From Salisapilia sapeloensis CBS 127946 (taxonomy: Eukaryota > Protista > Oomycota), in contig JAADVB010000027.1 in the NCBI GenBank assembly GCA_023334545.1, positions 1 to 64,000 of the forward strand: a stretch of DNA of 64,000 bases. Direction: 5' to 3'. A program made the position numbers and the translations under genes. This document shows positions 10,410-30,001 of the stretch, piece by piece; position 1 is the stretch's first letter, and every line of letters begins with the position of its first letter. The notes below the pieces were generated by a model. It did not search any database and was not told the DNA's origin. It saw only the letters and a list, made by a program, of their open reading frames with translations.

Positions 10410-11196
10410 AATTGAAAAGGAGGATGCGTTCGAAATCGGATGGCATTGGCGGGACTTGAAGAGGTTAAAGACAGGATTATGTAGAAGTATATGCTCGTGA
10501 CAGAATGCAAGGCCTTTTTGCGTTGATCCGTCCAATCCATACCATCCTCCCCGCGATCCGTCTTTTTAATACCACCTTGAAGTACGGGAAAAGATCCGGT
10601 GCGCTGATCGACTAGGCTGATGGCCACCCACATTGACTCGTCGCGAGGTCTCAAACATCGCGTGATGACTCGGTTTCATCTAACATCCTATTTTTCCACC
10701 TACCATCACCTACTTCGAGGACGATTCGCTGCACGGCGCAATGCACCGGCACTTTTCCCTAAATAGCAAAGTTCCTGTAGACGAAATTTCTTATTCAAGA
10801 TATAGTGGACTTGGCCGATTAGCGAGAGCCATGAAGAACAATCGCCACGTTGTGAAACTTCAGAAGACAGCTCCTGCGCTCCCAGTCTATGCATGCATCG
10901 ATTTCCTAATCCCTCGCTAGGGTTAAGCCCCAAGCAGCGTTTCTATAGAAAACCAAGTCGAGTAAGCACACACTGGCTTTTCTCGTATCATGCCATCCGC
11001 AGGATTTGTTTTCAATGGATGCTAGAGAGTCCGTCTTATTTGCAAAGCCACGTTGATACGAACCTCCGACGAACTATGGGCTGACGCGATAGAGATCATG
11101 CTAGTTGCAGGAGCAGCGTTGTCACAAAACATCCGCTTGCACTTCAGAAAAACGAGCGACAATCGCTGCGCCCAAAATTCCGCTCTTCCTCTCAGT

Positions 11197-11212
11197 TCAC
11201 TTGTCAATTTCG
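11197..11212 (+). promoter_or_regulatory. Oomycete Initiator+FPR core promoter of sugar transporter 1
   Basis: TCACTTGTCAATTTCG, about 70 nt upstream of the ATG at 11268. Confidence 0.6.
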
Positions 11213-11267
11213 TCTCGACCAAGCACACCGCCTTCTCCATCTACCCAATTTGGATTGAATCAACATC

Positions 11268-12785
11268 ATGGCCGCGCTCGACAACCCCAACGACGTGTAC
11301 ACCGCTGCCAACAACGACTCGGACAGCGCCAGCCACACCAACCCGAGTGAGCCCAAAGACGCCTTGGTGCTCAAGCCCAACGCCATCCTCTACACGAGTG
11401 TGCTCGTCTCCTTCCTCCTTCCGCTCCAGTACGGTTGGAGTACCAGTCAATTGAATCTGAACAAATTCAACAATGAAGACGACTGTAACGCTGACCCGGT
11501 CCAAGAAGGAACGTGTGTCATGTTCCCGGGTCACTCCAAGCTCCAGTGGACCTTTGCCGTCAACGCATGGATTCTCGGAGGTATGATCGGTGCACTCTCG
11601 ATTGGTCGCTTCTCTGACCGCTTCGGTCGTGTCCCCAGTCTGCGTGGCAACTGCGTCCTTATGGTCGTTGGCGCTGTCATCCAACTTGCTGTCTCCAATG
11701 TCTGGGCATTCGCTGCCGGCCGTTTGATTGCCGGTCTTGCTTCCGGTGGTGCCTCGGGTGTCGTCAGCTCCTACATTGGTGAGATCTCTCCTCCGCACCT
11801 CCGCAGTTCGCTCGGTGTCGGTTTCCAGATTTCTATCACGCTTGGTATTCTGATCGTCAGTCTCACCTTCTTCTTCGCCAACACCTCCAGCGGATGGCGA
11901 TACATTGCTGGCTTCCCGATTATTCTTGCTGGTCTCTTTGTCATCCTCTCGCCGATGCTTATGGTCCGAAGCCCAGTCTGGCTGCTCAACAAGGGCAAGG
12001 AAGATGAAGCCAAGAAAGAACTTGCTCGCCTCTACGGTGAAGAGAACGTCCCGATGGCCATGGCTTGGCTCCAGACCAAGCTCGAGGACTCGGACGATGA
12101 AGGTGCCGACGGTGCTGAACCCGTCAAGGACAACAAGCGTGCTCCCAGCATCTTCTCGTCGCTCCTCATTCGCCAGTTCCTTACGGCTACCTTCTTGGCC
12201 TGCTCCCAGCAACTCCTTGGTATCAACGCCGTCTTCTACTACTCGAGTGACCTCTTCACGAGCGCTGGTATTGATGACGACCGAATTGGTACGGTTATCA
12301 TTAACGTTGTGAATGTGGTGCCGACTCTGTTCGCCGGTATGCTATCCAACCGCTTCGGCAACCGTCCGATGGTTCTCACTGGTTTCGCCGGTATGCTTAT
12401 CAGCTGCATTGGTATCACCATTTCCCTGTCCACCGGCGTTGACTTCTTGTCCATCGTCTTCACGGCGCTCTACGTTGCATTCTTCGGTATCAGTATGGGA
12501 CCGCTCGTGTGGGTCATCCTGCCGGAACTCTTCCCGAACAACGCTCGTGCCACGGCCGTGTCCATCTGTGTCGCTCTTAACTGGCTGTCCAACTTGATTG
12601 TCGGTGTCGCGTACCCGTACATTGCCAGTGCTCTCGATGACCTAGGCTTCTTGCCCTTCATCGTTCTGCTCGCCATCTTCTTGCCGACTGCATGGTTCTG
12701 CGTCCCGGAGACGTTCGGCAAGTCTACCGATGAGATCCAGGAAATGTTCATCGGTGAGAAGAAGAACGCTCTCGCGGAAGCATAG
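11268..12785 (+). CDS. MFS sugar porter (GLUT/SLC2A-like), canonical paralog 1
   Basis: About 12 TM segments; SDRFGR, GEISPPHLR, QQLLGINAVFYYS, GPLVW and PETFGKS motifs; intronless. Confidence 0.95.
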   Translation: MAALDNPNDVYTAANNDSDSASHTNPSEPKDALVLKPNAILYTSVLVSFLLPLQYGWSTSQLNLNKFNNEDDCNADPVQEGTCVMFPGHSKLQWTFAVNAWILGGMIGALSIGRFSDRFGRVPSLRGNCVLMVVGAVIQLAVSNVWAFAAGRLIAGLASGGASGVVSSYIGEISPPHLRSSLGVGFQISITLGILIVSLTFFFANTSSGWRYIAGFPIILAGLFVILSPMLMVRSPVWLLNKGKEDEAKKELARLYGEENVPMAMAWLQTKLEDSDDEGADGAEPVKDNKRAPSIFSSLLIRQFLTATFLACSQQLLGINAVFYYSSDLFTSAGIDDDRIGTVIINVVNVVPTLFAGMLSNRFGNRPMVLTGFAGMLISCIGITISLSTGVDFLSIVFTALYVAFFGISMGPLVWVILPELFPNNARATAVSICVALNWLSNLIVGVAYPYIASALDDLGFLPFIVLLAIFLPTAWFCVPETFGKSTDEIQEMFIGEKKNALAEA

Positions 12786-12951: not shown

Positions 12952-14615
12952 TTACAAAGTCAGTAACATCCTCTCCACATCATCTAACATCGTCCGTGCC
13001 GTCTGCGTAATACTTGTATCGCTTTCGTACGCTCGTCCAAACCTGCAGAAGCACAACATATCAGCCACTGCCGATTAATTTTAATCAGTAGCTGTCTACA
13101 TACACTGTCAACGAATGTCGCAGGTGCTCACGTGACTCCAGTAGAGCAGACCGTTTGTCAGAAGATGTGCATGCATCCATTCCAGATTCGTACAGCAACT
13201 TGCCAATCTGCATATAAAGGAGGCCACGGGATGGGAGGGCTAGTTTCGGAACGACCCATTCTGTGGCACTCAATTCCGCTCTGAGGTAGTAAACGGGAGG
13301 TTCCTGCTCTTTGCCTTTTACATCCATGTGGTCGATGAGAAAGTTGCCCAAATCTCGAGCCAACGATGCTTGGGTGGCGTTTCGGCGGTGATGCAGTTTG
13401 GACGATATCAGCCAGCACTTCTTGTAGGCAGTCCATTGGTGTTGGGCTGTAGGAAGAGACGGGATCTGACTCAAGAGAGACGAAAACTCTTTTGTGGCTT
13501 GCAGGATGCTTTCGTCAGAAGCACGGAAGCCACAACGAAGGCATTGAAATGGACAAGTAGCTGATAAAACGCCATTTTCATCGCAACTAGGATTCAAGCA
13601 CTTGTATCCGTCGAGATAGTCATCTTCCGTCGGTCTATCGGTACTCGTCGCCAACTGTGTCGAGCAGCGAGAGCATTCACATGTGAAAAAGTAGGATGAC
13701 TGGAGGGCTTGTTGGCGTTTGGGCGTGGATTCCAACAGCTCAGTGTAGGACACCTAGTGTTATACACACCAATAGGCGTTAGTCTTTCCCTTCGTATTCG
13801 TAGTGACGTACAAGACTTACCGTCAGCTCTTCGCCAATCTCTACGTGCCGTATAGCTCGAATGAACATCTTGTCATTCCGAAAGCTGACGATGCAGTTCG
13901 GGTAGCAAGAGTGATTGAGCATGGCAGCGTCAGGAAAGAGACCGATCGCAACCGGCGCGTTGACATCATTGGCGATCGTAAATGCGTTGCAGTTCACTCG
14001 ACAAAAGAGCAGCACAACGTCATCTTTTCGCCGCTTTAGAAGCTCTTCAAAAGATGCCTTCACATGATTGTACTCGGAACGGGTGATGAGCTGTATCACG
14101 AGAGCACTCATCTCTTCAAATTGTCCGATCTTCGTCTCGGCGTGCTCACCTGCAAGCGGATTTCACTCAGCCATAAACGACAATCACGAGAAGAAAAGAG
14201 TACCGTAGTGATGCTGGAGTTGGAGTACGCCTTGCATTTCTGTCGAGTTCGAATTGCTCGTGAAGAAGAGTTTGCAAGCTAATCGGAAGACGAGCAAAAC
14301 TGTCTGAGAGACGGATTTGCCGGACGCCATAGGAATCTCCTTCCATGCAGCACATTCCAATTTGTGTCCTCCCCTCCATGCATTTTGCTGACACTGTCGA
14401 CTGCAAAAGCGAAGACGCCGACAGCTTCCACACTTGCGGAGAATGACGTCTCTTGTGCTAGTCCGTAAGCACCAGTCGCATGCTGTTACGGACACGCGTG
14501 CAAAGGCAGACGACTCTAGAACACGTGTATATGGAAGAATGGGATGCAAGGCGACTCCTCCGCGGCCTCGTCCAGTCGAAATCGACTCGACAGCGAACAT
14601 TGGCTTTCGTGTCAT
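12952..14615 (-). CDS. SMYD: SET and MYND domain lysine methyltransferase (SMYD family); multi-exon
   Basis: MYND finger CDWC...CGSC...FCSRQCQ...HKLEC, SET motifs NCNAFTI and AMLNHSCYPN, post-SET YFFTCECSRC. Last exon spliced to TAA at 12952. Confidence 0.9.
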
Positions 14616-15880
14616 TTAAGTGTGTCCAGGTGTCAAGCCACGCCGCTGGCACTTTACGCCCGAAGTGACGAACCATTCAACAGAACGTATTATATTTCAA
14701 GCCAAAGCACCAATCATGCTGTCGGATATGTCAATTTCTCGTGTCTCTACTTCGACAAGAGCAGCGACTACCACCATTTTAAGACGCTGCATACGTGAGC
14801 CTGCAATGTGTCCGAAGAAAAGTGCTGGAAATGACATGGATGCCTAGACGAGCATCACATTCGCATTGTTACCAGCTTGCTTCATTGGTCCCAATGCGAT
14901 CAAAGCACAAGCCAGCTTAAAGTCGATGTCTACAGCTCCGACGAGATATGCCATGCAGATCGGGCGAAGAAGAGTCTTTACATCATGCTCCCGGGATATG
15001 TAAAACTCGAGCGGATGATTATGTCGAACGCATGGATTGGTGGAGAAATTATCAGTGCTCTCTTTCTGGATGCCTTTGGTCATCGAAAGGCTGAAATGTA
15101 TAGCTGCAGTGCCACTCTCATCATCGAGTTATGTGTACATCTGGGTAATGTCAGCCGGGTAGCTCATGTCTGGCTTCGCTTCTGAAAGCGCAACTTTCAA
15201 AAAGCAGTATTTCGACATCATTTGCGTCTAGATGGACCAGCAAATCTTCTCTAACAGCGCAGTAGCTTTCTACGCATGTGACTTTCCAAAAATGACAGCA
15301 TCAGCAATGACAAGATTTAGACAATCTTGATGAATGTCGTCAGTGTGACACCGACATACCTTGCAGGTAGCGGTCTACACGCTTTGGTAATTGATGGTGC
15401 TCTGTACAGACCCTTCGTCTCGCTCACCGGTACTATAGGCATGATAACCGCGTTGCTCATGAGCATCTTGTCAGTATCCTTTCCTCTTCACAGCAACGGA
15501 TGTTATTGAATAGGAGGTCGGACAAGATACTATCACGCAGGCCATCCTGTCTCACCTTCTACCAAGTTCAGCATGTGCAAATGCTGTGTTCATTTGCTTA
15601 AGCTCGAGTTGGCTTTCCGATTTTATTGGTGGCCTTAGTCATCCTTACCTATTGTCTCCTTAAAACGACTTGAGCTTTGTGTCTTTTGACGTCCTTTACA
15701 GCGTCGAAAGTCATCTCCTACTTGAGCATATCGTTGACTGGAAAGTATATGACAGAGGATATCTAGACGCAATTTCAAAAGAAGCATTAGCCGAACCAGT
15801 AAGCGCTACAGCACTTTAAACAATTCATTGTATGGCTGGTCTATCGCTACTCTTCGCTTGCCCTATCGCCCGCTCATTTC

Positions 15881-17574: not shown

Positions 17575-19101
17575 ATGTCAGCAAAGCTATCGCCGCGTCA
17601 AGGCGACATGAACGTCAAGACACCGGTCATCGACGAGCAACCTACCACGCACTACGAAGACCTGCTCAAGGAGCCAGAACACAAGTTGAAACCACGCTTG
17701 ACGCTCTACACGAGCATCATCGTCGCCATGGTCGTTGGTGTGCAATACGGCTGGAGCATCTCCCAGCTTAATCTTTCGACTTTCCATGACTCAGATGACT
17801 GCAACGCTCGCCCTGTACCCGAAGGTCGGTGCTTGATGTTCCCAGGACACTCGGACCTCGAGTGGGTTTTTGCTGTCAATGGCTGGATCTTTGGAGGCAT
17901 GATCGGATCCCTTGGCACTGGTCACTTTGCCAAGCGCTATGGTCCAAGGAATACATTGCGAGGTGCATGTGGCATTATCATCATCTCGGTTGTCATCCAA
18001 ACAAGTTCTTATAACGTCTGGCAATTTGTCGTTGGCCGTCTAGTAGCTGGGCTTGCATCCGGTGCCTCCTCTAGTATCATCAGTGCCTACATTTCGGAAG
18101 TTTGTCCACCGCATCTTCGTAGTGCGTTTGGCGTCGGATTTCCACTCGTGTTGTGTATCTCCATCTTACTCGTTGCCATCGCCTTCTTCTTTGCAGACAC
18201 ATCCAGCGGATGGAGATATATGGCAGGCTTCCCACTGATCCCGACAGCCATCTACTTGGTCGGGTCTTTCACTGTGATGGTAGAGAGCCCGCCATGGCTT
18301 CTTGTACAGGGTCGAAGAGAAGAAGCAAAGCAGGAACTTGCTCGTCTGTACGGCGAAGAGGGCGTAGTCATAGCTCTTGCGTGGATCGAGCCCAATGGTG
18401 ACGAGTCTCGCATCAGTCAATCCTACAGCGACTTGGGTGACGACATTGTCCATCCGCTTCACGATGGTAAAACGCCAACACTATTCTCAAGGGAAATGAT
18501 ACTGCAGCTATTGGTTGCGCTTGGCGTGATCGGTTCCCGTCAGATGTGCGGCATAAATACTGTATTCTACTACTCTGCTGGTCTGTTTGTCGACGCTGGC
18601 ATTGAAGATGATCGTATTGGGACGATTATCATCAACGGCGTCAACTGCATCCCACCCTTAATAGCTGGTGTGCTTGCCACAAAACTCGGCAACAAGAAGA
18701 CCCTCATTTCAACGTCATTTTGTGGAATCCTAAGTCTCATTGGGCTTACGATTGCTCTCGTCACCGACGTTTCCGCGCTCTCGATCGTCTTTACGGCTAC
18801 ATTCGTCATCTCCATCAATGCCGGATTGGGTGCATTGGCGTGGGTCGTGGCAGCGGACGTCTTCCCAGACGAGGTACGACCGAGTGGATTCGCGCTCTGT
18901 GTTGCCTCACAATGGTTAGCAAACCTTATCGTCGGTGTTGGATACCCATACCTTGCATCCGCAATAGGGACGCTGCGTTACGTCCCTTTCATTGGCATCT
19001 TGGTCATCGCCATTCTCTTCATGATGATGGAACTCCCGGAAACCTCAGGAAAGACGAACGAAGAAATCCAGCAATACTTTCAGAAACGCCGAAACAAGTA
19101 G
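17575..19101 (+). CDS. MFS sugar porter-like protein, divergent paralog 2
   Basis: Colinear with paralog 1; SEVCPPHLR, RQMCGINTVFYYS, PETSGKT; intronless. Confidence 0.93.
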   Translation: MSAKLSPRQGDMNVKTPVIDEQPTTHYEDLLKEPEHKLKPRLTLYTSIIVAMVVGVQYGWSISQLNLSTFHDSDDCNARPVPEGRCLMFPGHSDLEWVFAVNGWIFGGMIGSLGTGHFAKRYGPRNTLRGACGIIIISVVIQTSSYNVWQFVVGRLVAGLASGASSSIISAYISEVCPPHLRSAFGVGFPLVLCISILLVAIAFFFADTSSGWRYMAGFPLIPTAIYLVGSFTVMVESPPWLLVQGRREEAKQELARLYGEEGVVIALAWIEPNGDESRISQSYSDLGDDIVHPLHDGKTPTLFSREMILQLLVALGVIGSRQMCGINTVFYYSAGLFVDAGIEDDRIGTIIINGVNCIPPLIAGVLATKLGNKKTLISTSFCGILSLIGLTIALVTDVSALSIVFTATFVISINAGLGALAWVVAADVFPDEVRPSGFALCVASQWLANLIVGVGYPYLASAIGTLRYVPFIGILVIAILFMMMELPETSGKTNEEIQQYFQKRRNK

Positions 19102-19115
19102 ATTAAAGTCGTGCG

Positions 19116-19552
19116 TAGACTCTGGAAACTTAGCCGTCCAGCATGTTAGAAAGTGTCTACAGTCACCAACTTCGAGATAGTTTAGGGCGTTAGTAAACGT
19201 TTGTGAGATTTCGCAGTTCTTGAATGCTATTTTGTATGGTGTAACCATGGAGATGGAACTTAGGCAGCTAACGATTTTTGTTCATAGGCTGAAGTAGGCA
19301 ATCTACTACATAGAAAAAGCGTATCTCCTCCCTGGAATCGCTCCGGCAGTCTCCACAGCTGTCGTGCATCAATTTGTAGGGTTTGGTGTTTTGGATTATA
19401 AGCTACGATCATTGGCTAGTCCAGCAATTAACGTAGCCCATATGCAATTAAGTACGAACTGTGTACTAAACCACCTTAATGTTGGTGACTGTAGACGTTT
19501 TTTATGTACGAATACCACATAACGTGTTGGATGCCCAAGTTACCAGAGTCTA
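19116..19552. repeat. Imperfect inverted repeat (MITE-like remnant or shared 3'UTR element) between convergent transporter genes
   Basis: 19116-19148 matches the reverse complement of 19520-19552 at 27/33. 19155-19170 is the exact reverse complement of 19481-19496 (16/16). Confidence 0.75.
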
Positions 19553-19556
19553 AAAG

Positions 19557-19577
19557 TGCTTAGTGCTTAGTGCTTAG
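19557..19577. repeat. Short tandem repeat (TGCTTAG)x3
   Basis: Three exact heptamers directly outside the right arm of the inverted repeat. Confidence 0.7.
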
Positions 19578-19743
19578 GCATCTTCTAAACGGACTATAAG
19601 CCCAGCAGAAATGCAAGCCACAATTTACTTGAACGGCATGCCTAACATCAATCCTGCTGTATTGTACGCGGACGAGAGACTTGTAGGAAATGTATTAAAA
19701 CCTATACTTGAGCTAGAATGAAACTGTCGGAATTTACTTGTCC

Positions 19744-21264
19744 TTACGCACGTGCGGCAGCCTGACGCCGCTTCAGCCGATCCTGAAATATCCCCTGAAT
19801 CTCTTCATTCGATCGGCCTTGAGTCTCTGGTACTAGACACCAAAGGAAGAGAACTATCAGCGCCATGATGACTATGAATGGCACGTAGCGAAGCGATCCT
19901 AGCGCAGATGAAATGTACGGGTAGCCGATACCAATGAACAAGTTGCTAAACCATTGGCAGGCGACGCAAAGAGCGAACCCGCTTGCACGTGCGTAGTCAG
20001 GGAGGACGTCAGCTGCTACGACCCAGGCCAAGGCCCCAAGTCCTGAGTTAAGAGTAAGCACGAACGTACACGTGAAGACGATCGAAAGCTCCGAAATGTC
20101 CGCAATGAGTGCAATGGTAGTACCGATGTGACTTATGAAAGCACCCGTGGACATCCAGAGAAGCGTCTTTCGATTACCAAACTTGGTGGCAAAGACTCCG
20201 CCTATCACTGGCGGTAGCATATTGACACAGTTGACCACGACGGTTCCAATACGGTCGTCCTGGATACCCGCGTCTGTAAAGAGCGTAGAGCTGTAGTAGA
20301 AGACAGTATTCAAGCCTGAGAGCTGCCTGGATGCTATTGTTCCCATTCCGATAATTAGTTGAGGAAGCACGGACTTGGAAAACAGCGCCGGGGTCTTGCC
20401 TTCGTGAATCGGTTTGATAATGTCTTCGGCTAGGTCACTGTAGGAGCTGCTGATGTGCTGACTGTCCGTTCGAGTCGTTTCAATCCAGCCCAAAGCCATG
20501 GACACGTTTTCTTCCCCAAAAAGTCTTCCCAGTTCATGCTCAGCTTCATTGCGTCGACCTTTTAGTAGCAGCCAAGGCGGACTTTCCACCATCACTGTGA
20601 ACGATCCAACGAGATAGAGGGCGCTCGGAATCAACGGGAAGCCGGCGATGTACCGCCAACCGCTAGAGCTTTCGGCAAAGAAGAACGAGACAACGACCAT
20701 CAAGCTTGACGTCGCGATAGCAAAGGGCAGCATCACGCCCATGGAACTCCGCATGTGAGGCGGAGCCACTTCTTGGATATAAGTTCCAACGATACTAGAA
20801 CATGCACCAGAAGCAAGACCGCCAATGAAACGGCCGGCAGCGAATTGCCACACGTTAAAAGAGCTGGCCTGGATGATGGCAGCTACGATAGCAATCACGC
20901 TAACGCCACGCAATGTGGCTCGTGGACCGTAACGGGAAGAGAAATGGCCAGCACAGAGAGAACCCACCATGCCGCCGAAGATCCAGCCATTCACGACAAA
21001 AAGCCACTCGACTTCGCTATGACCTGGGAACATTAAGCATGTGCCATCAGCGATGGTCGCAGCGTTGCAGTCATCTTTGTTGTTATACGCTGTGAGGTTC
21101 AGTTGTGATATACTCCAGCCATACTGCAGAGCAGTTAGCAGCGAGCACAAGATGCTCGTGTACATTATTTGATTCGGCTTCACAAGTTCGAGCGGGTCCT
21201 CCAAGAGGTCCTTGTACTGCGTATGCGGCCCGGTATCCGGCGGTGGTGTCTCGACATCTCTCAT
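19744..21264 (-). CDS. MFS sugar porter-like protein, divergent paralog 3 (inverted)
   Basis: QEVAPPHMR, RQLSGLNTVFYYS, PETQGRS; intronless; closest to paralog 2. Confidence 0.93.
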   Translation of the reverse strand: MRDVETPPPDTGPHTQYKDLLEDPLELVKPNQIMYTSILCSLLTALQYGWSISQLNLTAYNNKDDCNAATIADGTCLMFPGHSEVEWLFVVNGWIFGGMVGSLCAGHFSSRYGPRATLRGVSVIAIVAAIIQASSFNVWQFAAGRFIGGLASGACSSIVGTYIQEVAPPHMRSSMGVMLPFAIATSSLMVVVSFFFAESSSGWRYIAGFPLIPSALYLVGSFTVMVESPPWLLLKGRRNEAEHELGRLFGEENVSMALGWIETTRTDSQHISSSYSDLAEDIIKPIHEGKTPALFSKSVLPQLIIGMGTIASRQLSGLNTVFYYSSTLFTDAGIQDDRIGTVVVNCVNMLPPVIGGVFATKFGNRKTLLWMSTGAFISHIGTTIALIADISELSIVFTCTFVLTLNSGLGALAWVVAADVLPDYARASGFALCVACQWFSNLFIGIGYPYISSALGSLRYVPFIVIMALIVLFLWCLVPETQGRSNEEIQGIFQDRLKRRQAAARA

Positions 21265-22521
21265 GGTGTGGTTGGGCGTTTATTCCGAGGAGAGAGGGAT
21301 CCGGAGCGCACGTTGAATAATGGTTTATCGGGGCGAGGAGCATCGTTTACTCATACGACTGTCCGAAAGGGTGGTATAGCCGATTCCAATCACGTGATTG
21401 CAGATGTCTGATTGCTCGGTGATTTGTTGTTTTCTCGCGCTGTACCTCTTGCAGATATCGACGACGATGCGCATTACCTCTCGATTAACACGGATATACC
21501 TAAGGCTATACTTTCATGCCACGCAGTAGAATGTGATGACTACTATCTATCGTGGAGTAATAAAAAGATGCTGCTTTGTCATAGTAACCCAGGGTGCCAA
21601 AGTTCAATAGGCGCACAAATGAGCTGGTACTTTAAGCGACACATACACGTGCAGCACGTCAGACGCCCCTTCTCGGAAAGCCGTATATCGTTTCAACGTG
21701 GCAAGAAAGGATTGACACCCATACTTGAAGTTCAGTCTACCTGCTGAACTCCAGACGGTCGGAGTATGAAGCGACGAAACAAGCTGCACACACGTGTACG
21801 GGCGCATTGCGGCCCTTTCAGTCTCAAAGAGCCTTACTACTCGTCCGCTTGTAACCGACAATTTCTGAACTTCCAAGTGTGCTTTTTGGACGAGTCTTTT
21901 GGTAGAGCAGTTGGAGCAGCCGAAGCATACAAATCGCACACTTTTCAAGCAATCTTGTCCGGCTTTCATATTTGTTGGTTCAGCGATAGAATAAAGGATT
22001 GGTGTTGATGCAATGGATCAGACGTGATTGTGCATTGCGCCAAAGATATGCTACTCATTTGCTGTGGTCAGATCAGCCCTGTAGTCCAACCCGGTACCCT
22101 ATCACGGATTGCTCGACCCATCATTCAACAAATGAATGTCTGTGTACTGTGATGTGACTAGCTGCATGACAGTGCTCCAGTATAGATGGCTCAGTTCAAG
22201 AAAGAGAAATGTACAGCCAATGTTGAATAAGGAGTTTTGTGCTCGAATGAGCCACGACAACTATTATGCATTCGCCTTCACTGCGCTTCTAATTTCATTA
22301 AGCCTAAAGGTAACACGTGCGATGGATGCGGTCGGTCTTCATGTTATTTAGTTCGATATACTTCTTTGCTTGCATAACATCTTCCTGCTACCTGACAGAG
22401 TATTATAGGATGTATGTCTATTTGTTCCTTGTACCTTTTGCCAACCACCTAGCAAGCATGCACGCATAGCCACTATGGTCGTATGGTGGTAAGCTGCAAA
22501 GCCCGATTGACACAGGATACT

Positions 22522-25128
22522 TTATAACGATAGAAGAGCAATAATAGCCTCTGCAGAGTCTATCTTGGCACTGTATCCTTCAGGTTGTCTTGCCAGAGCT
22601 ACATGTCTAGTCTTCTGGAGACTCAGGAACCTAGAAGCGCAGCGGTCGGCGTTCTCTTTATCATCAAGCTGAGTAACGTAAACCATCGACTCGAGATACG
22701 CCACTTGCATTTGGCTCTCAATATCCCCCGAGAGAAATAAGAGTTTGTCGCTTTGATGAAGCCACTGAAGTATCTGCTGCGATCGTCTAGCAGAACTGAC
22801 GGAAGTAGCCATAGCCGCTTTAGCCAGTGTCAACAAAGCCTCTCCACGCAAGTGGACGTCTCCATGCTCTTCTAGTGTGGACATTAATATCTCTAAAAGG
22901 GTCCATGCGCTTTCAGCTTTCCCACTAGCGATCAAGATCTGACTGAGCGCCACATTGGCTTCGCACCAGAGCAAATCGTAGTGATTCTTCCGAGACATTG
23001 CAATAGCATCGAATGCAGCCTCCATTGCTGCGGCTGGATTTTCTGGACTAGATGCTAGACGCACTTGGGCGGTAGCAATGAGTGCCTGCGCTTCCAAGTA
23101 GCTAAAAGACAGCTCCTCAGATGCGAGTGTGAGGTGTCGAAGCCACTGGAGCGCATTTTCATACTCTTCCGCTTTGCTGTATAGGAGAGCCTGGGCCAAG
23201 ACAGCATCGAGGTAGGCTGGAAGGTCTTCCTCTTTCCGACACAGTTTCCACAGCTCCTGCATATGTAACGACGCTTGTGTGATCTCTCCACGATGCATAC
23301 ACCATCGCACTAGCAGCAACTGAGCTGCTCGTTGGATTGATTCTTCCTCCAGAACCGACTCAGGGACGCTTTCGGCCAAGAAGAAAAGTGCCTGGGAGTA
23401 CACATTTTCATCCTGCTCTGCTTTTGACGATTTCCACAGTCTACTTAATGCCATACGAGTGACGGTAAGCGCGATCTCGGCGGAGCTAGCCGAGTCATGA
23501 TGGCAAAGGGAGTGAAGCTCATTGTACGCATCTGTCAGCGTCCTGTGGCCCACGACGCTCCATCCTGCGGACGAAGTCAAGCACACTCCGCCGCTTAATC
23601 TCCATACTCTCTCCAGCACAGAGGATGCAGGAGACGGCCACTGCACCCCACCACCCACTTTTGTCTGCAAAGTCGACGTGTCTGTTTGTCGAGAAGCGTC
23701 CTGGGCTCTCGTCTGCCTCGAGTGCATTCCGATCGCAGGTCCGGAAGAGGAAGAGCTTTGTTCTGGTACTGACATGGAGCCAACTAGCGTCACGCACTCA
23801 CGTATTTTCTGCCACATATGGAGGGGCCGGACTGCTGACGACCGCCACGAGGCGGCAGCAGCGATGCCTCTCCTACTTTCCCTCGTCGATGTCGAAAAAG
23901 AGTTGGGACTGGAACCCAACAAGAGTTCGTTTTCTGCCTGAGCCAGCGATGTGATGACCTGAAGCACAGGAAGTTTGAGTTCCTTGGCGTACTCGAGTGT
24001 GCTCTGCATCATCGACATGACTTTGTCAGGCGGAGATCCATGACGCTGGTGTAGTCGGAGCTGCCACGAGAGCGCAAAGGCGATGCAGACATGATCACCC
24101 TCGCTTTGGCCGATGCGCATGGCCTCATCCAGGGCATCGTTTGCTCTATCGAAATGGTTAAAGAGCAGCTCCAATCCAGCAGAGTTCAGCGCTGCGTACT
24201 GTGGTCCGCAGCCAGCAAGAGCTGTTGGAGGGTTTGCAGAGCGCACAGTAGACGAATCACCCGGTCCAGCGTTCCAGGATTGAGCGTCCATGCCTTGGTT
24301 TATATTCACGACGCTTGTGTCTGCCGTGCCGCCCCCGATGGTGGAACTCCGTGACGTGCTTGAGCCTCGTCTGCCAACAGGATTCGTCAGCACGAGATCG
24401 TGGTACCGATGTAAACTGGTCACTGCATTGTCGTAGTCTCGTCTTTCGACTGCGCGAAGGTACTGGGAGAAGACGTGACTCGGTGTCTGTGCAGTACGCT
24501 CTTGCAGAGGCGACTCACCGCTGCTTTCCTCAGCAATGTCCTTTGTTTCATTCAACTTATCGAGCATGAGCACTACTTCTTCGCTGGTCCAGTCTGCTGT
24601 TTGCCGTCCAGACGGATGAGCTCTGTGTGTCGGTGCCTCTTGAAAGGTAGCTCTAGCGTCGGTGAATGTACCAATAAACGTACGAATGTCATCCAAAAGG
24701 TCCGCGACTCCCTCAAAGAAGCGGGCGTGAACGTTCGTGAGGAAGGTTCGAATGAAAAGTCCTAGTTCTGTGGCCCGACCTACTGCGCTTTGATGCGACT
24801 CGCCATTTCCTGTGACGAGCTGCTCGATCCAGTCCAGTACTTCTTCCACGTCCTCTGGCGTTTCAATCTTATGAAAACAGTCAAGGACGAAGGAGCCTAG
24901 ATAACCCACAGCAGACCGATTTCCAATGGACTGTTGGAGCTGCAATAACAGCTCTGTTGGCGTCGACGAGCCTTCCGACTGGGTCTGCATACGAAGGAAG
25001 CCAAGTAAAGACAGCACTACGGAAGGAGGCAGCTGGACAGCCAGGTCTCTTTCTGCTGGTGCATCTTGGGAATGGTGCTGCCGTGTGTACTCTCCGATGA
25101 GCAAGCTCACAGCGAGTCTCGTGGCCAT
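22522..25128 (-). CDS. APC5: Anaphase-promoting complex subunit 5
   Basis: N-terminal ELGLFIRTFL...FEGVADL, then YLRAVERRDYDNAVTSLHRYHD and QYAALNSAGLELLFNHFDRANDALDEAMRIGQSEGDHVCIAFALSW (APC5 domain), then TPR helices. Confidence 0.88.
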   Translation of the reverse strand: MATRLAVSLLIGEYTRQHHSQDAPAERDLAVQLPPSVVLSLLGFLRMQTQSEGSSTPTELLLQLQQSIGNRSAVGYLGSFVLDCFHKIETPEDVEEVLDWIEQLVTGNGESHQSAVGRATELGLFIRTFLTNVHARFFEGVADLLDDIRTFIGTFTDARATFQEAPTHRAHPSGRQTADWTSEEVVLMLDKLNETKDIAEESSGESPLQERTAQTPSHVFSQYLRAVERRDYDNAVTSLHRYHDLVLTNPVGRRGSSTSRSSTIGGGTADTSVVNINQGMDAQSWNAGPGDSSTVRSANPPTALAGCGPQYAALNSAGLELLFNHFDRANDALDEAMRIGQSEGDHVCIAFALSWQLRLHQRHGSPPDKVMSMMQSTLEYAKELKLPVLQVITSLAQAENELLLGSSPNSFSTSTRESRRGIAAAASWRSSAVRPLHMWQKIRECVTLVGSMSVPEQSSSSSGPAIGMHSRQTRAQDASRQTDTSTLQTKVGGGVQWPSPASSVLERVWRLSGGVCLTSSAGWSVVGHRTLTDAYNELHSLCHHDSASSAEIALTVTRMALSRLWKSSKAEQDENVYSQALFFLAESVPESVLEEESIQRAAQLLLVRWCMHRGEITQASLHMQELWKLCRKEEDLPAYLDAVLAQALLYSKAEEYENALQWLRHLTLASEELSFSYLEAQALIATAQVRLASSPENPAAAMEAAFDAIAMSRKNHYDLLWCEANVALSQILIASGKAESAWTLLEILMSTLEEHGDVHLRGEALLTLAKAAMATSVSSARRSQQILQWLHQSDKLLFLSGDIESQMQVAYLESMVYVTQLDDKENADRCASRFLSLQKTRHVALARQPEGYSAKIDSAEAIIALLSL

Positions 25129-25786
25129 CTCGTGGGCTTTTCGCTGATGGTATCTAGCGGTTCGGAATTATATACGCAACTGTTAGATAGATTTTTCTGG
25201 GCCACTATCCATACCATGTGGTGAAAATGGGTTCACTTATTTGGTATTGTCATATCCGTTTCAATTTACCGACTGCCGGTTATTCGAAGGTTTGCGCATA
25301 CTGACCGAGAAGCGCAGTACTCGCAAAAGACTGCAAAGGCAGTTGACTAGCATTTGAAAGCTATTGTACCATGTACGACAAGTAATCTATTCGAGCTGTA
25401 GAATGGATGACAATATAATTTGTGTCAACATAACGCTGTCCAAGATAGACACAGTAAGAAGCGGAGTGCTTGCACAGGAAGAAGTAGAGATATGCAAGCC
25501 TACACTGTCATTTATTGCGATTTATTCGATGAGCGTCGCAGTCAACGCATGATGGGCATTTTAGTCTATTGATGCTTACATTTGGAAAGTCAACCACGCA
25601 TCGCGGCATACGAGAGACAGATGTAGCATGAAGCTCTTCATTACCAAGAGAAACTTTGTAGACATTTATGAGTCCGACCATCCTCGCTTGGTGTAAAACG
25701 CAGATGGTTGTATCTGCAGAAAGCTAGCATAAACGAAGAAGATTACCATTAGTCAATTCACAGACTTTGGCTCTAGACTTTCAACT

Positions 25787-27343
25787 ATGACTTGCAGAGA
25801 GATGGAAGGCACTGGCGTGTCACCAAGGCAGCCATTTGCGTCCTGTAGTACTCCAGAAGTACTAGAAAACAACTCATTTACGATATCGCACGTAGACCAA
25901 GATAAGCATCTGAAGACTGAAGAGCCAAAGCCCAAATGGATCATGTATTCAAGCGCTGGATTGGCAACCCTCTTCGGGTCCCATTATGGCTGGTGCATTT
26001 CCCAGCTCAACCTCTCGACTTTCCATGACTCGGATGACTGTAAAGCTCGTCCAGTACCGGAAGGCAAGTGTCTTATGTTCCCAGGACACTCGGACCTGGA
26101 GTGGACATTTGTTATTAACCTTTGGCTCTTTGGCGGTATGGTCGGTGCCCTCAGCGTCGGCCATTTCGCTTCCAAATACGGTCCAAAGCGGGTGCTTCGC
26201 TTCAACGCATTTGTGATCATCGCTTCGGCAGTACTTCAAGCCAGCTCCTTTCACGTTTGGCAGTTCGCGATCGGCCGGTTTATTGCTGGACTAGCGACTG
26301 GAATTACCTCTGGGGTGGTGCCTGGATATTTGTCTGAGATCTCTCCTCCCAGCATGCGAAGCTCACTTGGTGTTTCGTTTCAAGCTGCGACTGTTCTTTC
26401 GATCTTGCTGGTTATCCTGACATTCTACTTTGCCAACACAAGCTCTGGATGGAGGTACATCGGTGGCTTTCCTAGCGTTCTGGCGCTCACGTTTCTGCTC
26501 TTCTCTCCTCGAACCATGGTTGAAAGTCCAGTTTGGCTGGTAGTAAAGGGAAGACGAAGCGAAGCAGAAGGCGTTCTGGTACGAATGTATGGCAAGGAAA
26601 ATGTGCATCTTGCCATGCAAGGGATTGAGTCCACTCGAACTGACGACGGCAACCTGAATAGCATCTACAGCGACCTGTCGGAAGACCTCGTGAAGCCACT
26701 AAGAAGGGGAGAGACACCATCCTTGCTGTCACCAGAGTTACGTCTGCAGATGATCGCTGGTCTGGCTCTCGTCGTCGGCAGGCAGATGACGGGTATCAAT
26801 ACAATTTTTTACTACTCTAGTGGCATGTTCCGGGATGCTGGTGTTCAAGATGATCGCGTCGGAAACACAATTATCGACATTGTAAACGTTTTACCTATGC
26901 TGGTGGCCATCAAATGTGTGAGCAGATTTGGAGCTAGAAAGATGCTCATCAGCGGCACTTGCACGATGTTGGTCAGCGCCATCGGGATGACTGTAGCGCT
27001 CTTAACCGAAGTCTCCGCACTGTCGATCGTCTTTTCCGGTATCTACGTCTTCGCTTTTCAAATGAGCCAAGGACCCTTCGTCTGGACAGTTTGCGCAGCG
27101 GTGTTTCCAGACTCGGTCCGAGCGACTGCTATGTCTCTCTGTGTCGGATTCCACTTTTTCTCCAACCTCGCTGTTGGCGTCTTCTACCCATACCTCTCGG
27201 CTGAAATCGACGCATACCGCTACATCCCGTTCTGTGGCTGCATGATAGCCCTTGTCTTCTACTTAGTCATCTATCTTCCCGAAACGACTGGCAGAACGAC
27301 GGATGAAATTCAGCAAGATTTCCTAGCTCGTCGCAAAAAATAG
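25787..27343 (+). CDS. MFS sugar porter-like protein, divergent paralog 4
   Basis: SEISPPSMR, RQMTGINTIFYYS, GPFVW, PETTGRT; intronless. Confidence 0.93.
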   Translation: MTCREMEGTGVSPRQPFASCSTPEVLENNSFTISHVDQDKHLKTEEPKPKWIMYSSAGLATLFGSHYGWCISQLNLSTFHDSDDCKARPVPEGKCLMFPGHSDLEWTFVINLWLFGGMVGALSVGHFASKYGPKRVLRFNAFVIIASAVLQASSFHVWQFAIGRFIAGLATGITSGVVPGYLSEISPPSMRSSLGVSFQAATVLSILLVILTFYFANTSSGWRYIGGFPSVLALTFLLFSPRTMVESPVWLVVKGRRSEAEGVLVRMYGKENVHLAMQGIESTRTDDGNLNSIYSDLSEDLVKPLRRGETPSLLSPELRLQMIAGLALVVGRQMTGINTIFYYSSGMFRDAGVQDDRVGNTIIDIVNVLPMLVAIKCVSRFGARKMLISGTCTMLVSAIGMTVALLTEVSALSIVFSGIYVFAFQMSQGPFVWTVCAAVFPDSVRATAMSLCVGFHFFSNLAVGVFYPYLSAEIDAYRYIPFCGCMIALVFYLVIYLPETTGRTTDEIQQDFLARRKK

Positions 27344-28379
27344 ACTTGGCTTTTGCTCGTAGGTTCCTTCTTGGCATGTTTGCTGTGGGTAAGAGAATGT
27401 GTTCGTACTAGTTTTGACTGGGCATACGTAGCATGCTTCCGCTCGTACCTACTCAATTTAGCGCTGCATGTACAGCTTCTAGCGAGCCACACCAAGGACC
27501 TAGTGAAAGATCTCAATCGAATTTGGATTGCGCTGCACTTGGGTGCAATCTAGCATGTCGCTTGCATACTCTTGTCGCAAATACTGCGCCGTAGCAGCTG
27601 AACACTACCATGAACGCACCAAAATTGTACTCGAAATGTCCAACCAGCAAGCAAAATTCACTCGAAAATGACAAATACCATCATTTAGAAGACCACAAGA
27701 TGACCACGAGACACGCTGGGAGCCTGCCCATCGCAGAGCACACTCGGCACCAGCAGAAAGGGAGTTGGCCGTTCGATTGTCGCTAGCTCTAGGCCTGCCT
27801 TTACTTTTAACTCCCTCGTCAGCAGAATCAACCGGAAGGCTCGCCGCCGTCGACAACGCTGCTATCGCGATGTTAGCAGTCCGTTAGGACTGTGAGCCAG
27901 GGCTAAATAGGCTTCTTCCTCATCTCATTTTACAAAAAAACTCCAGATGACGAGAGATTTATCGCACGCAAGACGAGTCGACGACTTCAGCGTCGCAACG
28001 AAATATGCCGATACAAACTGAAGCAAATCGCTATGACAGTTGCACCGTCATCACTCTTCTTAATCTGCTTTATTGCTCAGCCTCTAAGCAGGTCTATCGT
28101 AAAGCATATTAATCGTGTTTTATTGCTGGGGTGTTCGGAAGAGGACAGAGAATGACATTTTGTTGTCACCAATTTTAATCTACGTGGTGCCGACTTTAAC
28201 ACCATTGGTCGTTTCGTGGGATACGAGAGTAACGGATCACTAGCGTATCACACAACCTTTCCTGGTCTCGAATGGCTGTGAAGCGACGGAAGCTTCTCGT
28301 GGATGGAGTCAGCAACAGTGATGTTTACGAGGGTGATCAAATCGTCTGTGAATGCCAGCAGAGTAAATTTTGAACAACT

Positions 28380-28395
28380 TCACTTTGCCTTTTGC
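28380..28395 (+). promoter_or_regulatory. Oomycete Initiator+FPR core promoter of sugar transporter 5
   Basis: TCACTTTGCCTTTTGC, 32 nt upstream of the ATG at 28412. Confidence 0.55.
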
Positions 28396-28411
28396 ACTCG
28401 ACATCGAAGCA

Positions 28412-30001
28412 ATGGCACCAAACGCCTCCGATCGGATTCCATCACCACATAATGGTGCAGACTACGTAACGTATGAGACTTCTGCTACAGGCTCTTCGCC
28501 AAAACATCATGCGGATCTTTTGACTCCGGCAGAAGAGGAAGTCACGCCTCGATGGACCATGTACTCCAGTGCCTTCATGGCTGTATTATTTGGTTGCCAA
28601 TACGGCTGGAGCATCGGCCAGCTCAATCTTTCCACATTCAACGACGCGGACGAATGTAGTATGCGACCAGTACCTGAAGGTCAATGTCTCATGTTCCCTG
28701 GGCATTCCAAGCTAGAGTGGACTTTTGTCGTCAACGCGTGGCTTCTCGGTGGCATGGTCGGTGCACTCACCATTGGACACTTTGCGTTCAAGTACGGCCC
28801 AAAGACAGTGTTGCGAGCCAACGCTTTCGTGATGATCGCATCAGCTGTGCTGCAGGCTAGCTCCTTTAACGTTTGGCAATTCGTTGTCGGGCGATTCGTA
28901 GCTGGATTGGCGACTGGAGCCACTACCGGTGTTGTGCCTGGTTATCTGAGTGAAATCGCCCCACCGCGTATTCGAAGTGCTGTTGGTGTTGCGTTCCAAA
29001 TTTCGCTTGTTGCCTGCATGCTTCTTGTGGTCATCACATTCTTCTTCGCCAACACAAGCAGCGGATGGAGGTATATTGGCGCCTTCCCAGCTGTACTAGC
29101 TATTATCTTCCTCGCCTTCTCTCCATTTTTCATGGTCGACAGTCCCGTGTGGCTGCTTGTGAAGGGACGAAGGGATGAAGCCGAGCGTGAACTCGCTACT
29201 CTATACGGCAAAGAGCACGTTGCTACAGCTTTGGGCTGGATCGAATCTACGCGGACTGTCGACGGACAAATTAGCAGCGCCTACAGCGATTTATCCGAAG
29301 AACTTGTCAGACCCGTTCAAGAAGGAAATACGCCATCTCTGTTTGCCCCCGAAATGCGTCTACAGCTCATCGCAGGACTCGGGCTAGTCATCGGAAGACA
29401 GCTTACTGGATTAAATGCTATCTACTACTACTCCTCGAACCTCTTCCAAGACGCTGGTATCGAGGACGGTCGAATTGGTACGGTCATTATCAATTCGATC
29501 AATGTTATCCCGGTCTTGTTCGCTGGCTCCATGGCGACGAGATTTGGTGCCACAACATTGCTTCTTTACGGCACATGGGCGATGTTTATCAGCTTTATCG
29601 GCATCACCGTTGCTTTTGCCGTCGACATATCCGCGCTGTCGATCGTCTTCTGTGGAACATTTGTGTTTGCGGCTCAGCTCAGTCATGGTCCTTTTGTATG
29701 GACGGTGTCTGCAGCGGTCTTCCCTGACAACGTCCGTGCAACAGCCATGGCTGTATGCATCGGTGCCCATTTCCTGGCCAACCTGATCGTTGGTGTCGGA
29801 TACCCGTACCTCTCGTCGGCCATCGGTGACTACCGGATGGTTCCATTCGTCGTGTGTATGGTATTCATGATCTGGTTCTTAATGGTCTTGGTGCCCGAGA
29901 CGACCGGGAAGACGACCGATGAAATTCAGGATTATTTTGCGGACAAGAGGAAGGCAAAGCGAGTTCCTCGCTCTAGTCACGATGTCGGACACAACGTGTA
30001 G
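28412..30001 (+). CDS. MFS sugar porter-like protein, divergent paralog 5
   Basis: SEIAPPRIR, RQLTGLNAIYYYS, GPFVW, PETTGKT; first ATG at 28412; closest to paralog 4. Confidence 0.93.
   Translation: MAPNASDRIPSPHNGADYVTYETSATGSSPKHHADLLTPAEEEVTPRWTMYSSAFMAVLFGCQYGWSIGQLNLSTFNDADECSMRPVPEGQCLMFPGHSKLEWTFVVNAWLLGGMVGALTIGHFAFKYGPKTVLRANAFVMIASAVLQASSFNVWQFVVGRFVAGLATGATTGVVPGYLSEIAPPRIRSAVGVAFQISLVACMLLVVITFFFANTSSGWRYIGAFPAVLAIIFLAFSPFFMVDSPVWLLVKGRRDEAERELATLYGKEHVATALGWIESTRTVDGQISSAYSDLSEELVRPVQEGNTPSLFAPEMRLQLIAGLGLVIGRQLTGLNAIYYYSSNLFQDAGIEDGRIGTVIINSINVIPVLFAGSMATRFGATTLLLYGTWAMFISFIGITVAFAVDISALSIVFCGTFVFAAQLSHGPFVWTVSAAVFPDNVRATAMAVCIGAHFLANLIVGVGYPYLSSAIGDYRMVPFVVCMVFMIWFLMVLVPETTGKTTDEIQDYFADKRKAKRVPRSSHDVGHNV

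Follow-up and report, generated by a model that had tools for sequence, protein, structure and literature searches.

What becomes of a sugar transporter when an arginine takes the place of a glutamine that binds glucose? The question is raised by a stretch of the genome of the oomycete Salisapilia sapeloensis CBS 127946 (assembly GCA_023334545.1, contig JAADVB010000027.1, forward strand), of which positions 1 to 64,000 form the window analysed here and give all coordinates below. Within 19 kb of this window lie five genes for sugar porters of the major facilitator superfamily (MFS), and four of them, referred to here as the RQ genes, carry Arg-Gln where the seventh transmembrane helix (TM7) of the family has its Gln-Gln (QQ) sugar-binding motif. 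The RQ genes probably encode working carriers with a changed substrate site and an altered specificity, and they make up a tandem subfamily, not described before, within a known family of transporters, with a rare substitution at a canonical substrate contact.

An arginine in the TM7 sugar-binding motif

The five genes are intron-less, with open reading frames that run uninterrupted for 505-529 codons (508-529, without stops, in the RQ genes). All of them match the Pfam family Sugar_tr (PF00083) across the full profile, with E values from 5e-104 to 4e-76; for paralogs 2 to 5 (P2-P5), which are the RQ genes, the values are 9.5e-77, 4e-76, 4.6e-86 and 1.5e-77, the matches run from profile positions 2-10 to positions 451-452 of 452, and the sole Pfam matches of the RQ proteins are Sugar_tr and MFS_1. 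As the family is defined by homology, the RQ genes are members of the sugar porter family (TC 2.A.1.1) despite their TM7 variant.

The TM7 motif reads SQQLLGINAVFYYS in paralog 1 (P1), SRQMCGINTVFYYS in P2, SRQLSGLNTVFYYS in P3, GRQMTGINTIFYYS in P4 and GRQLTGLNAIYYYS in P5. In short form P2-P5 have RQMCGINT, RQLSGLNT, RQMTGINT and RQLTGLNA, which depart from the sugar porter motif Q-Q-x-x-G-x-N at the first Gln, now Arg, and keep the second Gln, the Gly and the Asn. A first-pass annotation of the window had set the QQ of P1 against the RQ of P2-P5, encoded by CGT, AGG, AGG and AGA, and its motifs, codons and coordinates are all confirmed. It had also placed the arginine at a glutamine that contacts glucose, which is borne out by a phmmer alignment of P3 to solved structures: the Arg falls opposite Q280 of GLUT3, equal to Q282 of GLUT1, with the next Gln opposite Q281/Q283 and the Asn opposite N286/N288. 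In the crystal structure of GLUT1 it is Q282, Q283, N288, N317 and E380 that hydrogen-bond the glucoside (PMC11169512).

The genes and the sites in them that are discussed below, with alignment columns named after GLUT1, are as follows.

P1, 11268-12785, plus strand: canonical TM7 QQ kept, Gln codons at 12207-12212.
P2, 17575-19101, plus strand: RQ gene, Arg322 encoded by CGT (18538-18540); pocket columns Q161 Pro (18142-18144), E380 Asn (18817-18819) and N411 Gln (18910-18912); Pro of the A motif, 17944-17946; YSDL, 18424-18435.
P3, 19744-21264, minus strand: RQ gene, Arg313 encoded by AGG (20326-20328); pocket columns Q161 Pro (20725-20727), E380 Asn (20047-20049) and N411 Gln (19954-19956); Pro of the A motif, 20923-20925; YSDL, 20431-20442.
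P4, 25787-27343, plus strand: RQ gene, Arg332 encoded by AGG (26780-26782); pocket columns Q161 Gln (unchanged), E380 Gln (27059-27061) and N411-W412 His-Phe (27152-27157); Pro of the A motif, 26183-26185; YSDL, 26666-26677.
P5, 28412-30001, plus strand: RQ gene, Arg329 encoded by AGA (29396-29398); pocket columns Q161 Gln (unchanged), E380 Gln (29675-29677) and N411-W412 His-Phe (29768-29773); Pro of the A motif, 28799-28801; YSDL, 29282-29293.
ANAPC5-like housekeeping gene, 22522-25128, minus strand: between P3 and P4 (Pfam ANAPC5, E 2e-16); outside the feature under study, and used as a marker and for comparison of expression.

An AlphaFold2 model of P5, built on an alignment of 54 sequences, has a mean predicted local distance difference test score (pLDDT) of 86.9 and a predicted TM-score (pTM) of 0.85. 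The model has the 12-helix MFS arrangement, cytosolic helical bundle and discontinuous TM7 of the sugar porter fold, with helices at 245-303 and 502-517 in addition to the 12 long ones and with TM7 broken at 332-333. Arg329 is placed at the end of TM7a just before this break, in a block with a pLDDT of 97, and lies in the segment that contacts glucose in GLUT1 and GLUT3. The top Foldseek match of the model is outward-facing, glucose-bound GLUT3 (4ZW9) at a TM-score of 0.88 (0.86-0.88 over GLUT3), with GLUT4, GLUT5, GLUT1, GLUT9, XylE, PfHT1 and STP10 lower down, and by sequence the best solved relatives in phmmer are GLUT3, GLUT1, GLUT4 and GLUT5, XylE and GLUT9.

The likeness to GLUT1 and GLUT3 (SLC2A1 and SLC2A3; E 4e-37, TM-score 0.88, 22-27% identity) extends to the 12 transmembrane helices, the cytosolic helical domain and the broken TM7. 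The differences lie at the arginine itself and at a number of other known sites: E380 is Asn or Gln, N411 is Gln or His, Q161 is Pro in P2 and P3, R92 of the A motif is Pro, the Arg of PESPR is Trp and E393 is Asp or Ala. To place these against the oomycete relatives, a column was counted as a signature of the RQ clade if the four genes had at most two residue types in it and at most 3% of the relatives shared them, which singled out 14 of 480 comparable columns. Three of these (Q282, E380 and N411) are among 25 preselected GLUT1 pocket columns, with 0.73 expected (hypergeometric p 0.03). At the E380 column in TM10, where the relatives have Gly, Ala or Ser, the residue is Asn in P2 and P3 and Gln in P4 and P5. 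The N411 column in TM11 is Asn or Ser in the relatives and Ala in a clade with a QK motif (below); in P2 and P3 it is Gln, while in P4 and P5 it is His, with Phe instead of Trp after it. The TM5 Gln equivalent to Q161 is replaced by Pro in P2 and P3 only among the RQ genes. None of the membrane helices of the RQ proteins has a clade-specific Asp or Glu, so that on sequence evidence the charge of the arginine appears to be uncompensated.

A second region of change is the A motif, which in the RQ proteins is G-H-F-A/S-(K/S/S/F)-(R/K)-Y-G-P-(R/K) and departs from the sugar porter consensus G-x3-(D/E/N)-(R/K)-x-G-R-(R/K). Pro stands where 142 of 143 relatives have the first Arg of G-R-K, and K, S, S and F stand where 141 of the 143 have D, N or E; degeneracy of this degree is confined to the RQ clade. 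In sugar porters the Glu of the SP motif hydrogen-bonds the backbone amides of the last two A-motif residues and so stabilises the outward state (PMC7898563). Since Pro has no amide hydrogen to offer, an altered conformational balance is a reasonable expectation. The SP-motif Glu residues themselves are kept (VESP.., PET.G[KR]), with Trp for the Arg of PESPR, as are the equivalents of E146, R153 and PET-x-G-K/R. The central loop, otherwise variable and of low confidence, contains in all four RQ genes a kept YSDL followed by acidic residues and G-x-T-P, and neither P1 nor any of the QK and QQ relatives of the printed alignment has YSDL at this position. The motif fits the Y-x-x-hydrophobic pattern of sorting signals.

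Relatives of the RQ genes and basic residues elsewhere in the family

Word-index searches with P3 and P5 as queries matched only oomycete proteins, of the kind labelled 'Hexose transporter 1' in UniProt, from Pythium, Globisporangium, Phytophthora, Nothophytophthora and downy mildews, and neither search gave a relative closer than 51% identity to any RQ paralog. In an alignment of 148 oomycete homologues the TM7 columns are QQ in 109, QK in 24 and HK in one, with a few having H, L, T, M or S before the Gln and none having RQ; the first-Gln column is Q in 133 and R never. RQ as the ancestral state of oomycetes, which the first-pass annotation had named as the outcome that would undo its proposal, is therefore rejected.

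A wider net brought in nothing closer. An exhaustive profile search of 1.84 billion cluster representatives put known QK and QQ clusters on top and nothing nearer to the RQ clade, a protein-pattern scan of metagenome contigs gave no confirmed member and a protein-language-model atlas returned only the same family names. The degenerate DNA pattern R-Q-x-x-G-x-N-[TA]-[VI]-[FY]-Y-Y, run on metagenome contigs, hit five loci without a true member among them, four being Ser-Gln sugar porters that match by way of AGY codons and one a chance match. Eukaryote-like sugar porters with Ser-Gln (ASQFSGINAVFYYS), about 25-30% identical to the window genes, are found on the Joint Genome Institute (JGI) metagenome contigs L002, L004, L005 and L006.

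In a tree of 49 rows (IQ-TREE, LG+C20 with posterior mean site frequencies, PMSF), P2 groups with P3 (support 100/100) and P4 with P5 (100/99), and all four RQ genes form one clade (100/99). This clade, P1 and the QK sequences make up a group (95/88) nested in a larger one of 34 rows (96/97), a placement that is the same in a tree of 68 rows, and by this maximum-likelihood placement the RQ genes belong to the oomycete 'Hexose transporter 1' family. Their branches, at 0.3-0.5 changes per column, are longer than those of most relatives. The inner order of P1, RQ and QK stays a trichotomy, as forcing RQ together with P1 costs 0.76 log-likelihood units (approximately unbiased test, p 0.35). Whatever the branching order, RQ and QK are separate substitutions, since Lys replaces the second Gln and Arg the first.

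An Arg four residues past the A motif is common to P1 and the RQ genes and occurs in no other homologue. Because of this, and because the five genes stand in one array, a local origin of the RQ genes from a P1-like QQ gene is most likely, with P1 the likely parent-type copy. The A motif of P1 is also off-family, with G-R-V for G-R-K, and together with the shared downstream Arg this suggests that drift of the A motif began before the change from Gln to Arg.

The QQ 'Hexose transporter 1' porters of Pythium, Globisporangium, Phytophthora and the downy mildews, with P1, belong to the same family as the RQ genes on the strength of the tree and of identities of 45-59%. The two groups have in common a first extracellular loop with two Cys residues, VESPxW instead of PESPR and a Ser where XylE and STP have the proton-coupling Asp. 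Gly, Ala or Ser at the E380 column is likewise a family trait, although the RQ genes themselves have Asn or Gln there. Unlike the RQ genes, the QQ porters have an intact G-R-K in the A motif, Asn or Ser at the N411 column and no YSDL in the loop.

The QK clade comprises 25 sequences, for example Phytophthora sojae PHYSODRAFT_516351 and proteins of Bremia, Plasmopara and Pythium oligandrum. It resembles the RQ genes in having a basic residue in the TM7 motif and Thr or Ser after the conserved Asn, as well as in its membership of the 95/88 clade, and it differs in that the Lys stands at the second Gln (Q283 of GLUT1), the A motif is intact and the partner residues in TM10 and TM11 are others. 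Its own pocket changes are Ala at the N411 column, Tyr or Phe at W388 and, in 14 of 24, His at Q161. On P. sojae JH159157.1 two QK genes stand in tandem (10001-11566 and 14224-15792), with an unrelated MFS gene upstream. A pectate lyase gene follows the second copy at about 4 kb, a distance also given as 8 kb from the pair. In P. oligandrum (SPLM01000038.1) a single QK gene lies within six genes of the BT1 (folate-biopterin transporter) family, at a locus that also has an acyltransferase and a UDP-glycosyltransferase. The pectate lyase was rejected as a functional hint, being absent from the P. oligandrum and Bremia QK loci, and positional orthology between these loci and the RQ array was rejected too, as the P. 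sojae, P. oligandrum and Bremia loci have only transporters in common with the window.

Arginine at the identical TM7 column is found in one further group of oomycete proteins. The exhaustive profile search returned two longer proteins with ARQFGGVSAVFYYS, from Albugo candida (CCI43728.1) and Pythium insidiosum (KAJ0406479.1), and a word search with the latter gave 11 members of 597-689 residues, all with ARQ[FL]GGV[SA]AVFYYS, from A. candida, A. laibachii, Lagenidium giganteum, P. insidiosum, [Pythium] brassicae and environmental assemblies. They are annotated merely as hexose transporter or hypothetical protein. This long-form RQ clade differs from the window genes in an extension that makes it about 100-150 residues longer, in Ser or Ala at N288 and Phe at W388, and in Ser and Asn at the E380 and N411 columns. 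In the 68-row tree it stands with a QQ sister outside the family of the window genes, with starred branches and many QQ lineages in between, and because of this separation its Arg is an independent gain, so that Arg has been acquired at the column at least twice in oomycete sugar porters. Counting QK, the QQ motif of oomycetes has taken in a basic residue three times, in the RQ array, the long-form RQ clade and the QK clade.

The notion, implied by the first-pass annotation, that RQ is peculiar to this genome is consequently wrong: ARQ is invariant at this site in the Albugo, Lagenidium and P. insidiosum clade, and RQ occurs in one insect protein as well. Outside oomycetes basic residues at the motif are rare in the sample inspected, with one RQ, from a cockroach, and one QR among about 140 representatives. 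The cockroach protein, Blattella germanica PSN47389.1 (955 residues), has RQLSGINAIIFFT in the second of two transporter-like domains. A source-unassigned MetaClust sequence of 671 residues (P0196) reads GQRLSGINTAFLYS.

Age, constraint and transcripts of the RQ genes

Across paralog pairs the proportion of synonymous differences (pS) is 0.72-0.82, which is saturated, and that of non-synonymous differences (pN) is far lower at 0.25-0.39, or 0.25-0.36 within the RQ clade. This marks the duplications as old and shows the genes to be under purifying selection. As 33% of the ungapped columns are invariant among the four RQ genes, the invariance of the arginine alone is unremarkable, and its weight is that of a fixed derived state at a column that is almost everywhere Gln. 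It had been proposed from the differing Arg codons that the residue was under selection. With synonymous sites saturated and one third of the columns invariant, the codons do speak for an old, retained Arg and not for recent gene conversion, though what they show is only ordinary purifying selection on a derived state.

Public runs of the same organism contain this stretch, and transcription was looked at in two of them, X2 and X3, which have assemblies of about 15 Mb and whose RNA status is read from the behaviour of their contigs. These contigs end in intergenic DNA on either side of ANAPC5, including near its 5' end, and have short GT-AG-type joints, and the word depth of neighbouring genes differs up to 25-fold, all of which suggests RNA. 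P4 is covered by a 2188-nt X3 contig (25418-27605) with no differences and no gap, P5 by contigs of 2297 and 4836 nt (X2 and X3) with no differences, and P2 by a 2.0-2.1 kb contig in both runs that matches exactly at 17719-17748, and P1 has a 1.3-kb, far deeper contig. As X2 and X3 contain 84-88% of the sampled words of 17575-27343, there is little room in them for a missing gene in that interval. The single origin, age and retention of the arginine follow from the one clade (100/99), the saturated synonymous divergence, the intact frames and these RNA-like contigs: it arose once in the RQ clade, is old and has been kept.

Mean word depth is about 945 in X2 and 347 in X3 for P1, about 91-120 for P2 and about 17-40 for P4, P5 and ANAPC5, so that the QQ gene P1 may be the main expressed carrier, contig depth being a poor measure of expression. 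In the DNA that separates P4 from P5, ahead of the start of P5, contigs of X3 skip 74 and 63 bases (27604-27679 and 28093-28157), and no open reading frame of more than 83 residues lies there. The skips have CT..AC ends (GT..AG on the minus strand) and may come from splicing of a minus-strand transcript, non-coding or antisense, or from a merge in assembly.

A related organism, 'organism B' (runs X6 and X7, 2025), has short contigs that are 90-96% identical to ANAPC5 (24100-25123) and P5 (28476-29990). In its P5 fragments, which lie outside the Arg codon, 11 of the 13 listed differences are synonymous. No P4 orthologue fragment was seen in these runs beyond a paralog cross-match at 25988-26104.

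What the RQ proteins may carry

The RQ genes are best explained as a lineage-specific tandem subfamily of the 'Hexose transporter 1' MFS porters, most likely derived from a P1-like QQ gene by a single early change from Gln to Arg at the first position of the TM7 motif. Gly would have given way to Asn or Gln at the E380 column and Asn to Gln or His at the N411 column as accompanying pocket changes, all of them retained through two later, old duplications. Alternating-access transport would be kept, and the central site would no longer fit glucose as it does in the QQ paralogs, the solute being a different one or one of the same class taken up with very different selectivity. The guanidinium group of the Arg may act as a hydrogen-bond or charge partner of the substrate, and as there is no membrane-embedded acidic partner for it, a carboxylated, phosphorylated or sulfated sugar is one candidate class. 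The degenerate A motif, with Pro for the first Arg and the Asp lost, should in addition shift the balance between the outward and inward states.

The first-pass annotation had spoken of a neofunctionalised clade for an anionic substrate. Its first half stands up well, as the RQ genes form one diverged clade (100/99), under purifying selection and transcribed, with extra changes at the E380 and N411 pocket columns, although nothing in this points to an anion specifically. An anionic substrate is plausible but unsupported; two points, the seemingly uncompensated charge and the differences of GLUT9 at the Q282 and E380 positions, are compatible with it. The window itself holds no hint of the substrate, the genes flanking the array being of the housekeeping kind (SET/MYND, ANAPC5, Sec24, Mre11 and similar), and a search of the literature turned up no usable residue-level data on fungal galacturonate carriers.

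GLUT9 (SLC2A9) has Y327 and C427 at the positions of GLUT1 Q282 and E380, Y327 hydrogen-bonding urate and C427 being tied to the loss of a hydrogen bond to glucose (PMC11169512). Like the RQ proteins it is a sugar porter with both positions changed, in its case retuned to an organic anion, and it is among the fold matches of the P5 model; unlike them it has a Tyr and no basic residue, and it is not close kin. The case of GLUT9 shows specificity to be set at these columns, which is no proof that Arg means an anion.

Arginines that bind anions are known elsewhere in the MFS. In GlpT and UhpT a mid-membrane TM7 Arg (R269 and R275) or a TM1 Arg binds the phosphate or carboxylate of sugar derivatives, and the galactonate symporter DgoT is an anion carrier with a pocket arginine. 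These belong to other MFS families, GlpT and UhpT to the organophosphate:Pi antiporters (OPA) and DgoT to the anion:cation symporters (ACS), and use an arginine pair, on TM1 and TM7 or on TM1 and TM4. The RQ proteins, in contrast, have no Arg or Lys in TM1 (only a His in P4) and match Sugar_tr, and their membership of either family was rejected on these grounds.

A bolder proposal is that oomycetes have three times put a cationic side chain into the QQ motif and each time created carriers of acidic or phosphorylated carbohydrates. This we consider unlikely; if true, there would be an uncharacterised nutrient route in oomycete pathogens and saprotrophs, for uronic acids from host or algal walls or for sugar phosphates.

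Several points weigh against a changed substrate site. The enrichment of signatures in the pocket is modest (p 0.03) and was obtained with a self-chosen list of columns. The direction of the Arg side chain is taken from homology. The long-form RQ clade lacks the TM10 and TM11 changes, which are thus not obligatory partners of the Arg, and the degenerate A motif could mean poor transport or none. An Arg in a sugar site needs no anion, since R144 of LacY binds a neutral galactoside. The record of X2 and X3 does not itself state that they are RNA, and no substrate assay of any RQ, QK or QQ member of the family was found in the literature, where in 2020 the glucose-uptake site of P. infestans was still called unknown.

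It is possible, though on the whole doubtful, that the RQ proteins are neutral hexose or polyol carriers in which the Arg serves as a hydrogen-bond donor to hydroxyls and tunes affinity or preference, as in an ordinary expansion of nutrient transporters with different kinetics. The equivalents of Q283, N288, N317, W388 and N415 are kept in all four RQ genes, and with Gly, Ala or Ser at the E380 position family-wide the GLUT1 pocket is not used unchanged; moreover H, L, T, M and N occur sporadically at the Arg column in relatives, and binding proteins commonly use Arg to hold neutral sugars. However, burying a charge without compensation carries a cost unless the charge is put to use, and the helices yielded no acidic partner for it. 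The Arg is also fixed and comes with two more pocket changes and, in P2 and P3, the loss of Q161, and basic residues at the QQ motif are limited to three discrete conserved clades and are not scattered.

Yeast glucose sensors, Snf3 and Rgt2, have a long cytosolic C-terminal signalling tail on a transporter-like body, and the RQ proteins, at 508-529 residues, have no such tail and end 15-40 residues past the PET motif. That they are non- or weakly transporting receptors (transceptors), signalling or trafficking by way of the YSDL-bearing cytosolic loop, is a weak alternative and quite unlikely. It draws on the A motif, a stabiliser of the outward state (PMC7898563) that is degenerate in the RQ clade only, on the clade-specific YSDL-acidic-G-x-T-P motif in an otherwise variable loop, on Ala at the E393 column in P4 and P5 and on an RNA-like contig depth below that of P1, depth again being a poor guide to expression. 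Yet Ala at the E393 column is also found in some QQ and QK relatives, the equivalents of E146, R153, the SP-motif Glu and PET-x-G-K/R are kept, and four diverged copies with differing pocket details look more like substrate diversification than like one sensor.

That the RQ genes are relaxed, decaying duplicates of P1 with the Arg a tolerated accident, as their long branches (0.3-0.5 changes per column) and lost motifs might suggest, is highly improbable and contradicted by frames of 508-529 codons that are intact despite saturated synonymous divergence, by pN far under pS with 33% of columns invariant, by the transcript-like contigs and by the mostly synonymous differences in P5 of organism B.

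Carbon uptake in oomycetes is poorly understood, and the TM7 QQ motif is among the most conserved substrate contacts of sugar porters. Because of this conservation, and because the urate preference of GLUT9 has been linked to the Q282 and E380 positions, the conserved, expressed RQ subfamily provides concrete candidates for non-glucose carriers, as do the two further clades in which a basic residue stands at this contact or beside it. Of greater interest is the wider pattern, in which the QQ motif has gained a basic residue in three oomycete clades, two of which lie unremarked in public databases. Being intron-less and about 1.5 kb long, the RQ genes are cheap to test, and if their substrates were acidic sugars the family would be of interest for engineering the uptake of pectin-derived sugars.

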